NCBI RefSeq assembly: GCF_036971445.1
Contig: NC_091473.1
Span: forward strand, 250,728,001-250,792,000
Length of the DNA stretch: 64,000 nt
Origin: Narcine bancroftii
Lineage: Eukaryota
Direction of reading: 5' to 3'
Both the position numbers and the translations under genes were made by a program. Positions 1,354-53,385 of this stretch are shown here, piece after piece (position 1 is the first letter of the stretch; every line of letters starts with the position of its first letter). The notes under the pieces were generated by a model. That model saw only the letters and a program-made list of their open reading frames with translations. It was not told the origin of the DNA and ran no database searches.

Positions 1354-1674
1354 TTTCAGGTGCATTGTGGGCACAGAGAGATGTGCGTGGAGTTCGAGGA
1401 AGAACGATCACAATCGACTGTCACTATGAAGCAAGTTACCGTTCACACCAGAAATACTGGTGCCGAGAGTGGACTCATCTGTGTTCTGTGTTAGTGTCAA
1501 CAAACGGGGACCATGAACGTAAGCGAAGACTGTCAATCACAGATAACCCCACGGCAGGAATATTCACTATTACCATGGAGAATCTTCAGACTGGAGACAC
1601 GGGATGGTACCGTTGTGGAATTTCACAACCTGCCATCGATCCAAAGTTCAACGTACATCTACTAGTAACTGAAG
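1354..1674 (+). CDS. Gene 1 V-set Ig exon (CD300/pIgR/CMRF35-like)
   Basis: Acceptor ccctcag|, donor GAAG|gtaatt. Translation VSGALWAQ..ITIDCHY..KYWCREWTHLC..FTITMENLQTGDTGWYRCG has the canonical B/F-strand Cys, the KYWC motif and the extra C-C' Cys pair typical of CD300/pIgR domains. Confidence 0.92.
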
Positions 1675-51400: not shown

Positions 51401-53385
51401 AGCAGGTGGCTGAGGCTGGGATCCGTGGTCAGGTGTTAGGAGCTCGGATGGGCGGGCAGCTGGTGCGAGAATCTGTTGGGAACGCAGGAGGATGGGCAAC
51501 CAAGAGAGGATTCACAGTGAGGGTGTCAGGAGCTTCTGTAGGTGGGCAGCCAGGGCATCGGGAGATTGGATGGGTGGGCAGATCGGGGTGTTGGTAGCTC
51601 GACTGGGTGGGTGGTTGGGGTCAAAAATAGGTCATTCAGAAAATCCGTGATTTTTGGGCCAAAAAACGGGGAGGGTCAACTATTACACGAATTGACTATT
51701 ACATGAGTATATACGGTATATTACTGAATTATGAGCTGTTAACACAAACAGGAAATTTTAATTCCACAAACTGATTGAATGGATAGGATCATGGTAGAAA
51801 ATAGAAAACTGAGGGTGGTTTGATGGATATCTGCAGAGCAATCAATGTTTTTATTAGCAGACGCTTTATAGTAGAAGTCGGGTCACCCGTCTGAGTGCTA
51901 ATGGTACCATGTAACCTTGTTGCAAGGTTGGTTGATCGGGGTCTAAATCAGCTCCCCCACCAGGTTTGCCTGGTGAGGAGGTGGGGGGTTTAGACACCCT
52001 GCAAGATAAAAAACAAGAGCTGTTAAAGGGTGGACAAACCCTCTCATAGGTCAACGGCCATCTAACAAACATGTGCCGTGAAGCGCAGAAAGGGCACCCC
52101 TTGCATCGAAGCTTGGTCTGGCCATTCACTGCAACAGAACTTCCCCCACACCCCCGGCCGTCTTGGACCTCACCATGCTGCTGGATCCAGGAGGGGATGT
52201 CCAGAGGGTGGGTCTGGACCTGTGCAACCCTCTACTCACCTAAATCCATTCACACACACGCTGTTCCTTTCTGAGGAGTGGGGTATCCTCATATTAAGCC
52301 CAATGAACTGACTGAAAGGAACCATCGTCATCCTATTGGATGGGTAGCCTGAAAGTAGTAGAAGTTTTTTGTCACATTATACCTCATACAGTGAGAAGTG
52401 TTCTTCTGTGAGCATTCTAGCTGGTTATCTCCAACATTCATAAAGCCATGTGAAGTGTACAAGCACAGAGTTTCAATGGAAAGGAAGATCAATTAATGTG
52501 AAGCAAAGGGAGTACAAACACTGTTGTGGGTTCATTTAGGACCCTGTTGACTGTGTGGAAGAAGTTGTCTTTGTCCATTGGTGCATTTCTCCCTGAAGAG
52601 AGGAGGGAGAAGAGAGGATGTCTGGGGTTTGACAGGTCCTCCAGTATGTTGGCTATCTTTCCTATGCAGTGGACAATGTGGCTAACATCTGTGAAGGAGA
52701 AGGAGCTGTATTCACCACCTTCAATAGCTTCTCCTGATCTTTAGTTAAGCAGAGCACAGTTTGGCACTTGCAGGAGAAGAATGAATCGAGGGCTCCTAAA
52801 GTAAGATCATGAATAATAAATCCAGATGGGTATTCTGTAGGAACCTCTGTTCGTAGCTTTGCAAAAAATTTGTGGAATTTGTTACCACAAAGAGAAGTTG
52901 AGGTGTGAAGCAACAAGTTATTAAAGGGGAACTGGACAATACAGGGAACAGTAAACTTAAGGGAATGCAGGTGAATCGCTTAAGTTCAAAGCCAACACCA
53001 GCCTTGACCCTAAGGAGCAGACTGTAAATGGTCTTATCGTAGACTTGCTCAGAACAATGGCATACATCTTTCATGCTTGTCAATCTCGGATTTTTCTTTT
53101 AATATATTTTAGGATTCTGAACTTCATGAAGACAGCATCATTTATGCAGATCTGCAATACCCCAAAACACCTGCCCAATTGGGAAATGACCAAAATGAAA
53201 TTGTGTATTCCGCCGTGCAGTTCCAGAGTACATCGAGAGCAGGACACTCTGTTAACAGGGAGGACAATACCACCTACGCAAATGTTAAATATCAGAACTG
53301 CTCCTCAAGGAATAATCGAGAAACTGCTTCTCCTGGTACTCCGCATAATTCTGCACAGGCAATTTACAACACAGTTGCTTCTTAG
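24186..53385 (+). CDS. Gene 2: CD300/pIgR-like Ig receptor, inhibitory type; join(24186..24222,26202..26522,26939..27262,43212..43302,46144..46235,49618..49664,53113..53385), 394 aa
   Basis: Seven exons with compatible phases sum to 1185 nt (394 aa + stop). Signal peptide, V, C2-like, stalk, neutral TM, tail with ITIM/ITSM motifs. The model spans an N gap at 47150-47333. Confidence 0.8.
25540..26045 (+). repeat. Degenerate (GA)n polypurine tract, copy 2
   Basis: Same position relative to the V exon as 745-1195. Confidence 0.9.
26202..26522 (+). CDS. Gene 2 V-set Ig exon
   Basis: Identical by eye to 1354-1674, with the same splice sites. Confidence 0.92.
26939..27262 (+). CDS. Gene 2 C2/I-like Ig exon, GC-AG donor
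   Basis: Same as 2091-2414 except one M-to-V change (RYMTE vs RYVTE). Donor AAAG|gcaagt. Confidence 0.88.
28305..30192 (-). mobile_element. Duplicated copy of the Gypsy element, with an extra ~230-bp deletion
   Basis: Same LTRs and CACAC TSD; ORF 29324-29860. Confidence 0.85.
30632..31058. mobile_element. MITE-like element with terminal inverted repeats (partial copies at 6041-6410 and 22021-22125)
   Basis: Imperfect inverted termini ggccctttcaaacagc ... gcagtttgaaaggtct. Confidence 0.5.
32446..32482 (+). pseudogene. Dead signal-peptide exon (paralog of 24186-24222)
   Basis: ATG TAC ATT CCA GTC TTC CTC CTC TGA TCC CTG CCT G|gagagt: Cys codon changed to stop and donor GT changed to GA. Confidence 0.85.
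33578..40198 (+). mobile_element. Solo LTR of the same Gmr1-like element, interrupted by an L1
   Basis: Same flanks as 7324/9922 (gacttt| ... |ccttcaataaaa) but no internal gag/pol. Confidence 0.8.
33665..39515 (+). mobile_element. Near full-length L1-clade LINE (5'UTR, ORF1, ORF2 APE-RT), frameshifted
   Basis: ORF1 motifs RRNNIKIVG and EIERAHR. ORF2 pieces over 35536-39260 with QETH, GGDFN, SRID, DAEKAFDRVEW, QGCPLSP and LFADD. A-rich tail. 14-bp TSD agagagccaa(a/g)gtg at 33651-33664 and 39516-39529. Confidence 0.95.
40645..40959 (+). pseudogene. Second V-set Ig exon (copy B2) with premature stop
   Basis: Paralog of 10437-10751 with in-frame TGA at 40815-40817 (AGA in B1). Retains the C' Cys (WCRVWNQRC). 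Confidence 0.85.
41984..43020 (+). mobile_element. Solo LTR, duplicated counterpart of 11776-12810
   Basis: Same flanks acag / atgg. Confidence 0.75.
43212..43302 (+). CDS. Gene 2 stalk exon (GLEYVCHRYTTASTSTVNSEHHKISSNSSL)
   Basis: Paralog of 13002-13092 with the same splice sites; one N-to-T change. Confidence 0.8.
43634..44105 (-). mobile_element. 5'-truncated RTE-clade (BovB-like) LINE insertion
   Basis: ORF 43689-44063 reads GHVSRM..RLPK..YGEL..R.RGAPKKRYKD..C..C..SRIGLVSH. 9-bp TSD gacaagtgt. Absent from copy 1. Confidence 0.9.
45127..46101 (+). mobile_element. Independent solo LTR of the same family
   Basis: TG...CA termini with a perfect 4-bp TSD ATTG. Confidence 0.8.
46144..46235 (+). 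CDS. Gene 2 neutral transmembrane exon (RSKEIIVLSATGVLLTVLIIFLLFWIKCTNR)
   Basis: Acceptor caccacag| in phase 2. Uncharged ~22-aa helix. Donor AGGG|gtgagt in phase 1. Confidence 0.85.
47150..47333. other. Assembly gap (184 N)
   Basis: Run of n in the sequence. Confidence 1.
48300..49260 (-). mobile_element. CR1-type LINE endonuclease/tether fragment
   Basis: ORF 48424-48630 (DWDKLFSGKDVFSKWKTFK); minus-strand VTWLQEGQDWQ at ~49195-49225. Confidence 0.7.
49618..49664 (+). CDS. Gene 2 small cytoplasmic exon (ESKNKRVDSRGNNETQ)
   Basis: Acceptor attttccag|, donor CAG|gtaaga. Phase 1 to 0 exactly bridges the TM exon and the terminal exon. Confidence 0.72.
51206..51716. mobile_element. Tc1/mariner-pogo-like MITE
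   Basis: 22-bp TIRs ctgtatatactcgtgtaatagt / actattacatgagtatatacgg (20/22 match); TA after the right end. Confidence 0.7.
53113..53385 (+). CDS. Gene 2 terminal cytoplasmic exon with ITIM/ITSM motifs
   Basis: Acceptor tattttag| in phase 0. Motifs IIYADL and IVYSAV (ITIM), TTYANV (ITSM), AIYNTV (ITIM-like). TAG stop at 53383-53385. Confidence 0.85.
   Translation, partial: DSELHEDSIIYADLQYPKTPAQLGNDQNEIVYSAVQFQSTSRAGHSVNREDNTTYANVKYQNCSSRNNRETASPGTPHNSAQAIYNTVAS

Follow-up and report, generated by a model that had tools for sequence, protein, structure and literature searches.

A probable activating/inhibitory pair of MDIR-family receptor genes with near-identical ectodomains in the ray Narcine bancroftii

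A stretch of 64,000 nucleotides (nt) from the lesser electric ray, Narcine bancroftii (NCBI RefSeq assembly GCF_036971445.1, contig NC_091473.1, positions 250,728,001 to 250,792,000 of the forward strand), hereafter called the window, was analysed at its full length. In our reading, which we consider likely to be correct, it carries two separate genes of the MDIR family of receptors, aligned in tandem on the same strand, one being of activating type (gene 1) and the other of inhibitory type (gene 2), the ectodomains of both having been homogenised by gene conversion. A preliminary description of this DNA had noted near-identical ectodomains followed by unrelated signalling ends. This observation was confirmed, and the interpretation then attached to it was, taken as a whole, partly supported. 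Every search was run exon by exon.

Duplicated ectodomain exons and gene conversion

Comparison of the 64 kb window with itself by BLAST revealed one tandem duplication, positions 1-13959 against 24799-44647, which is broken up by transposon insertions. Each of the duplicated blocks holds one receptor gene, with both genes on the same strand (for coordinates, see the table). On base-by-base comparison, the V exons showed no difference in 321 nt, the C2 exons differed at one of 324 positions (2393, A/G, giving Met in gene 1 and Val in gene 2) and the stalk exons differed at two of 91 (13041, A/C, giving Asn and Thr, respectively, and 13036, G/A, which is silent). Altogether, two residues differ across about 245 ectodomain codons, in agreement with the earlier claim of tandem same-strand genes with identical V exons, a single Met/Val change in C2 and a single Asn/Thr change in the stalk. 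The bases peculiar to gene 2 are G at 27241, A at 43246 and C at 43251, and these three diagnostic bases, together with two differences in the leader, tell the transcripts of the two genes apart. When about 200 relatives were searched against the window with tblastn, no further exon of the family was found on either strand beyond those of the two genes and the relic exons described below.

The exon anatomy is common to both genes. The splice borders consist of AG acceptors and GT donors throughout, except for a GC donor (GCAAGT) that follows the C2 exon in both copies, and the exon phases are all compatible, the immunoglobulin (Ig) exons being of phase 1-1, the stalk exon of phase 1-2 and both transmembrane (TM) exons having phase-2 acceptors. 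Since the stalk exon is the sole phase-2 donor and both TM exons accept phase 2, an in-frame joint to either TM exon is possible from the stalk alone. The ectodomain had been described as pIgR/CD300-like with V and C2 domains, and the domain searches agree with this: the V exon matched the Pfam V-set (E 3e-15), with pIgR and CD300/CLM-1 as the best PDB matches, and the C2 exon is FCRL-like, matching FCRL5 and CD22 in PDB and, weakly, Ig_2/Ig_3 in Pfam. In relatives among the rays and sharks, the C2 domains show 50-64% identity with this one. Two extra cysteines, one at the end of the C2 exon (...EICRY..., 2385-2414) and the other at the start of the stalk (...LEYVC..., 13002-13025), are co-conserved in relatives including skate MDIR5, and may form a membrane-proximal disulfide or a dimerisation site. 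An Arg-containing hydrophobic open reading frame (ORF) at 3081-3170 and 27929-28018 was considered as the TM segment of both copies and rejected, because no relative matches it and because it lies opposite a minus-strand ORF, which looks repeat-derived.

The divergence between the two copies is distributed unevenly. Outside two tracts of low divergence the copies differ by 4-15%, with several transposon insertions in addition. Within the first tract, 6 substitutions were counted in the 700 positions 1-700 (P 7e-9) and 11 in the 1689 positions 1212-2900, introns included (0.65%, binomial P 2e-22); within the second, only 3 of 949 positions (10752-11700) were substituted (P 3e-16). The background used for these tests was 167 substitutions in 3560 positions, or 4.7%. 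Since the low divergence reaches into the introns, it points to gene conversion and not to constraint on the exons alone. The tracts thus carry the signature of recent gene conversion, or of very recent patchwise exchange, superimposed on an older duplication. The sole highly variable stretch inside the first tract is a GA/CT-rich simple repeat in the leader-V intron (701-1211 against 25499-26059), which contains indels and about 22% mismatches.

Signalling ends of the two genes and their transcripts

The homology between the copies ends at 13959/44647, about 870 nt beyond the stalk exon, and both 3' modules are located outside the duplicated block. The TM and tail exons that follow the shared ectodomain are unrelated, as had been proposed, and the motifs bear out the two types assigned to them, that is, an Arg-containing TM with a short Tyr-free tail for gene 1 and a neutral TM with a tail carrying ITIMs (immunoreceptor tyrosine-based inhibitory motifs) and an ITSM (immunoreceptor tyrosine-based switch motif) for gene 2. 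The model lengths given earlier, 303 amino acids (aa) for gene 1 including its 37-nt leader and 394 aa for gene 2, are equal to the sums of the exons.

The cytoplasmic end of gene 1 comprises roughly 20 residues and is free of Tyr. Its TM exon is 58-84% identical to the TM segments of Mobula, Hemitrygon, Amblyraja, Rhinoraja, Scyliorhinus and skate MDIR5, the Arg being invariant, and the motif W.V.RW..F, again with invariant Arg, was found in 28 proteins, from skates, stingrays, mantas and sharks, out of 201 that were fetched. The 3' untranslated region (UTR) extends to about 15.74 kb, with an AATAAA at 15724. The 37-nt leader exon of gene 1 is situated upstream of the window, the RefSeq protein XP_069798680.1 (P0003) being the only source for it.

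Transcripts of gene 1 were followed in RNA-like contigs from four sequencing runs, aligned to positions 10350-16349, the positions of the joints being read after the '+2' shift of the cut. About half of the sampled V-intron-C2 words are contained in the four runs, which fits spliced RNA. In all four runs GT..AG joints were observed from 13092 to 14415 and from 14505 to 15016, and contigs of 572-602 nt span the stalk end, the TM exon, the terminal exon and the 3' UTR. Contig coverage ends at 15723, beside the AATAAA. The joints and the end of coverage together indicate that the activating-type 3' chain is transcribed as modelled and that the transcripts stop before gene 2. An RNA check on splicing had been proposed in the preliminary description, and for the 3' part of gene 1, from stalk through Arg-TM to short tail, it was positive. 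A read-through tail following the Arg-TM exon (VGLMETS..., included in the RefSeq protein) was ruled out by the contigs joining 14505 to 15016.

The tail of gene 2 would comprise roughly 110 residues, with two ITIMs and one ITSM. The TM exon is 43-61% identical to the TM segments of ITIM-type relatives including skate MDIR2, and the tail exon shows 38-45% identity with its counterparts in Hemitrygon, Rhinoraja, Leucoraja, Heptranchias and skate MDIR2, the ITIM/ITSM tail being conserved from Heptranchias to the rays. The only assembly gap of the window is intronic, and the exit phase of the TM exon and the entry phase of the 47-nt exon are both 1, so that the gap leaves the reading frame unaffected. 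By exon-by-exon alignment, the distance from TM to tail exon is 22-27 residues in skate MDIR2 (P0173), Rhinoraja P0073, Hemitrygon P0020 and Rhinoraja P0002, and the 47-nt exon of gene 2 together with the exon ends supplies an equal number of residues. With this spacing, a coding exon hidden in the gap is unlikely. Judging from the relatives of both TM/tail sets, the 3' modules predate the split between sharks and rays while the ectodomains are 99% identical, the contrast that defines paired receptors.

Features of the receptor locus, in positions of the window
Feature	Position	Strand	Remarks
Gene 1 V exon	1354-1674	+	pIgR/CD300-like V-set, phase 1-1
Gene 1 C2 exon	2091-2414	+	FCRL/CD22-like Ig, phase 1-1, GC donor, Met codon 2392-2394
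Gene 1 stalk exon	13002-13092	+	LEYVCHRY..., phase 1-2, Asn codon 13040-13042; RNA-like contig 13001-13092
Gene 1 TM exon	14415-14505	+	Arg near outer end, SYLIWEVGRWLLFALLVICTISVSWF TRETK (IWEVGRWLLF...); flanked by GT..AG joints in all four runs
Gene 1 terminal coding exon	15016-15063	+	15 residues, no Tyr, stop TGA; located via C-termini of relatives
Gene 2 leader exon	24186-24222	+	MWIPMLLLCSLP, own ATG, phase 1 donor GTGAGT; resembles signal peptides of relatives
Gene 2 V exon	26202-26522	+	Identical to gene 1 V exon
Gene 2 C2 exon	26939-27262	+	Val codon in place of gene 1 Met; same GC donor
Gene 2 stalk exon	43212-43302	+	Thr codon, phase 1-2
Gene 2 TM exon	46144-46235	+	Span without charged residue, IIVLSATGVLLTVLIIFLLFWI; phase 2 in, 1 out
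Gene 2 47-nt cytoplasmic exon	49618-49664	+	ESKNKRVDSRGNNETQ, phase 1 in, 0 out; skate MDIR2 counterpart ESKCNTHHRARANGT
Gene 2 terminal coding exon	53113-53385	+	Four Tyr motifs: IIYADL, IVYSAV (ITIM), TTYANV (ITSM), AIYNTV
Assembly gap	47150-47333		Sole N run of the window; intron between gene 2 TM and 47-nt exons
Low-divergence tract 1	1-2900	+	Against 24799-27748; interrupted by GA/CT-rich simple repeat 701-1211
Low-divergence tract 2	10752-11700	+	Against 40960-41908; purely intronic
Relic V-like exon V' (gene 1)	10437-10751	+	C2-stalk intron; open, phase 1-1; Pfam V-set E 4e-9
V' pseudo-exon (gene 2)	40645-40959	+	TGA at 40815-40817
Dead leader-like exon	32446-32483	+	Gene 2 C2-stalk intron; in-frame stop, donor GT changed to GA

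Family relations, proposed mode of action and alternatives

In a passage of PMC3031540 that cites Cannon et al. 2006 (Immunogenetics 58:362), MDIR is presented as a multigenic family of activating and inhibitory receptors of the skate, related to CD300, TREM, FCAR and pIgR. Using the Amblyraja relative P0082 as a query, we obtained 'Modular domain immune-type receptor 2' and '5' of Rostroraja eglanteria (UniRef names). The ray V domain is 57-58% identical and the C2 domain 55-58% identical to skate MDIR2 (P0173) and MDIR5 (P0156), with E values of 1e-32 to 1e-44, and the exon-wise identities of the ray pair to these two proteins range from 38 to 65%. As in the MDIR family, the ectodomain is composed of CD300/pIgR/TREM-like and FcR-like Ig modules, all Ig exons being of phase 1-1; the Arg-TM of gene 1 is 65% identical to that of MDIR5, and the tail of gene 2 is 38% identical to that of MDIR2, with the Tyr motifs aligned. 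Skate MDIR2 is built like gene 2 (V-C2-stalk, neutral TM, 'ESK...' segment and ITIM tail), and skate MDIR5, like gene 1, ends in a W.V.RW..F Arg-TM and a short tail. Compared with the MDIR proteins of the clearnose skate Rostroraja (Raja) eglanteria, the pair described here comes from another species and order (Torpediniformes) and has the two signalling types as neighbours, whose ectodomains gene conversion has kept 99% identical. By these similarities the ray pair is an addition to the MDIR family, which is already known, and not a new kind of system. The earlier suggestion that the pair may be undescribed therefore did not stand, because the family has been known from the clearnose skate since 2006 and the locus is annotated in RefSeq as a fused model of 1059 aa. 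The suspected origin from a cartilaginous fish was correct, the V exon being 100% identical (HMMER) to XP_069798680.1 of Narcine bancroftii.

The two ray genes show the traits of paired receptors, namely highly similar ectodomains in linked genes and a basic-TM, short-tail member next to a neutral-TM, ITIM-bearing member. Siglec-5/14 (and also Siglec-11/16) are tandem genes of primates, in which the ligand-binding 5' exons and introns are homogenised by gene conversion. Their TM and tail parts differ, with an ITIM and an ITIM-like motif in one member and a basic TM residue with the DAP12 adaptor in the other, and as members of a sialic-acid-binding V-set family they have a known ligand. The ray pair appears to be maintained in the same manner, by conversion of the 5' exons combined with divergent TM/tail exons, although the Ig families are unrelated.

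Among solved structures, those of mammalian CD300 and of pIgR D1 are closest to the ray V domain (E 2e-18 to 1e-50), and the CD300 family (CD300A/F, inhibitory; CD300B/C/D/E, activating) likewise mixes ITIM tails with charged-TM members. CD300 proteins, however, have a single V domain without C2, and their activating and inhibitory ectodomains are not near-identical, whereas in the ray genes the V is followed by an FCRL-like C2. Both ray genes thus depart from the single V-type Ig ectodomain of CD300 orthologues. The ray V resembles pIgR D1 and the ray C2 resembles FCRL5/CD22, but in pIgR two to five V-like domains are combined with an uncharged TM and a long tail that bears transcytosis signals and no ITIM, and the FCRLs have no V domain. 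Orthologues of pIgR would have tandem V-like domains only, no ITIM and an uncharged TM, while the ray genes have V-C2 with an Arg-TM or with ITIM/ITSM. The names given to relatives in RefSeq ('pIgR-like', 'FCRL5', 'CMRF35-like', 'CXADR-like') are only similarity labels and do not imply orthology.

Among the fetched relatives, Arg-TM and ITIM forms whose ectodomains are 87-94% identical were also found in Hemitrygon akajei (P0017/P0167), Rhinoraja longicauda (P0105/P0002) and Heptranchias perlo (P0157/P0153), the identity between activating and inhibitory ectodomains being 99% in Narcine, 94% in Hemitrygon, 89% in Rhinoraja and 87% in Heptranchias. From these comparisons, activating/inhibitory pairing seems to be recurrent in the MDIR family. 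We tentatively suggest, as a possibility that is still rather doubtful, that the Narcine pair is the extreme of a family-wide habit, in which ancient Arg-TM and ITIM/ITSM modules are repeatedly given the same freshly homogenised V-C2 ectodomain. If so, the conversion-driven 'decoy' arms race of paired receptors would date to the base of the jawed vertebrates, and a conserved adaptor with an ITAM (immunoreceptor tyrosine-based activation motif) would be implied in cartilaginous fish, even though FcR-gamma has been reported absent there. The locus provides a clean genomic example of paired receptors in cartilaginous fish, in which the conversion tract, the breakpoint and the two 3' modules are placed with single-base precision, and supports the view that activating/inhibitory pairing is as old as the jawed vertebrates.

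PIR, LILR, Fc-alpha-RI, CD300 and Siglec-5/14 are the known models for the use of adaptors and phosphatases by such receptors, and the basic TM residues of PIR-A, LILRA, Fc-alpha-RI and the activating CD300 members mediate adaptor pairing. By analogy, we infer opposite signalling from a common ligand. The product of gene 1, with Arg near the outer leaflet of its TM, a position like that used with FcR-gamma, and with a short Tyr-free end, would be activating and would presumably pair with an ITAM adaptor carrying an acidic TM residue. The product of gene 2, with an uncharged TM, two ITIMs and one ITSM, would be inhibitory and would presumably recruit a SHP-type phosphatase. Both receptors would see one ligand through the shared V-C2 ectodomain, and the recent conversion over about 2.9 kb, from the leader intron to just past C2 with the introns included, would keep the ligand-binding exons identical.

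Several observations weigh against this reading of the locus as an activating/inhibitory pair. RefSeq treats it as one gene, encoding XP_069798680.1 ('uncharacterized protein [Narcine bancroftii]'), which maps to the locus by tblastn. All four runs belong to a single study and were taken as RNA by guess only. The joint between C2 and stalk of gene 1 (2414 to 13002), which is presumably used, is not directly seen in any contig. Among the contigs over the gene 1 stalk, the stalk variant of gene 2 did not appear; contigs drop rare variants, so that its non-appearance is no evidence of absence. The splice chain of gene 2 is deduced from phase logic and homologues, the assembly gap sits within this gene between the TM and tail exons, and no transcript-derived Narcine protein was found for it, the search with the tail exon giving no candidates and that with the V ORF giving one skate protein. 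A survey of the shark genomes then available reported no homologues of FcR-gamma, pIgR or FcRL (PMC4016189). Unlike in that survey, pIgR-like and FCRL-like domains do occur in chondrichthyans, as seen in the MDIR-type family described here.

It is extremely unlikely that XP_069798680.1 represents one long read-through gene with two V-C2 units. This model exists and is built from the same family exons, but it reads past the donor of the Arg-TM exon, threads together ORF pieces between the genes (17672-18405, 20870-21136, 22095-22373, 23532-23639 and 24593-24700), of which 20870-21136 lies inside a degraded long interspersed nuclear element (LINE) at 19.6-22 kb, and then joins gene 2. Since the RNA joints lead the transcripts of gene 1 into the stop-bearing terminal exon, from which they run to an end near the poly(A) signal at about 15.74 kb, and since gene 2 begins with a separate leader, which has an ATG and a consensus donor, the model is regarded as a fusion artefact, and it needs to be split and is corrected here; the relatives, too, are as a rule single-unit proteins of 300-420 aa. 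An error of assembly, by which a single locus or two haplotypes were placed in tandem, is suggested by the long near-identical tracts and by the gap 2.5 kb past the end of copy 2, but it is very unlikely, because the copies differ outside the tracts as described above, with several transposon insertions including a LINE of about 3.5 kb, and because a stretch of about 2 kb in copy 2 is missing from copy 1. In addition, the homology ends 2.5 kb before the gap, each copy entering different unique sequence with a different set of family exons, and the stalk and 3' exons specific to gene 1 are present in independent runs.

The remaining alternatives concern the individual members. Gene 2 might be silent or a pseudogene, or the exons beyond 46 kb might be foreign or misjoined at the gap, leaving one activating gene and debris; the missing RNA evidence, the gap that parts the TM exon from the tail exons, and the V' exon and internal leader of gene 2, both already dead, are in favour of this. 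We nevertheless judge it unlikely, given that all exons are open and have good splice sites, with phases that match even at the unusual phase-2 joint between stalk and TM, that the distance from TM through the 47-nt exon to the tail is as in the relatives, skate MDIR2 among them, that no alternative upstream exons are present at 44.6-46.1 kb, and that V and C2 are kept intact by the conversion tract. Alternatively, the pair might be real and the Arg-TM member not activating but a decoy, a co-receptor or a receptor independent of ITAM adaptors, a view favoured by the want of an identified adaptor, by the survey in which FcR-gamma was not reported, and by the location of the Arg close to the membrane edge, beside Glu. 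This is also improbable, slightly more so than a silent gene 2. The Arg and its W.V.RW..F motif do not vary across sharks and rays, which favours a conserved contact with a protein inside the membrane, and comparable residues of PIR-A, LILRA, Fc-alpha-RI and activating CD300 members have an established role in adaptor pairing. The paired-receptor reading sharpens a question, namely which adaptor the invariant W.V.RW..F motif of sharks and rays works with.

Relic exons, transposons and history of the locus

Remains of a further V-like exon, here called V' and absent from the preliminary description, were detected in the copies of both genes. In the V' of gene 1, a conserved Cys, the second Cys of the CD300-type extra disulfide, is replaced by Tyr. 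The two V' copies (10437-10751 against 40645-40959) show 15 differences, 14 of which are non-synonymous; the ratio of 14:1 is not significantly above the neutral expectation (estimate, P about 0.07), and since both copies carry derived losses, the pattern is read as decay and not as selection. No splice joints were present at the borders of the gene 1 V' in the four runs, two of which gave unspliced contigs there and two no contig, and inclusion of V' in gene 1 mRNA was thereby ruled out for the sampled tissues.

The dead leader-like exon of gene 2 is located in a copy of about 2 kb (30956-32799) of the gene 2 upstream region, to which the gene 1 copy has no counterpart; the DNA at 32299-32660 is 82% similar to the region around the gene 2 leader. 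It probably served once as the leader of the V' exon. Taken together, the dead leader and the relic V' exons make each gene look like a fusion of two older tandem genes. We infer that the present genes arose by fusion of ancestral tandem MDIR genes, with leader, V and C2 derived from the first and stalk and TM from the second.

The C2-stalk intron of gene 2 also contains a LINE insertion (35536-38988, plus strand) without a counterpart in gene 1; in its long open ORFs an endonuclease domain (E 4e-11) was recognised, as was reverse transcriptase (E 2e-15) in a piece of 509 aa. The degraded copy at 19.6-22 kb, between the two genes, is an older LINE. Downstream of gene 2, a 19-bp tandem satellite at 56630-57504 comprises 46 copies with 87% matches and the consensus TAGGTAATAGAGGACCCAG. 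Remnants of long terminal repeat (LTR) retrotransposons, recognised by RNase H and integrase, are located on both strands at 59600-63100, 4520-5311 (minus strand) and 8958-9209 (plus strand), and are unrelated to the receptor genes.

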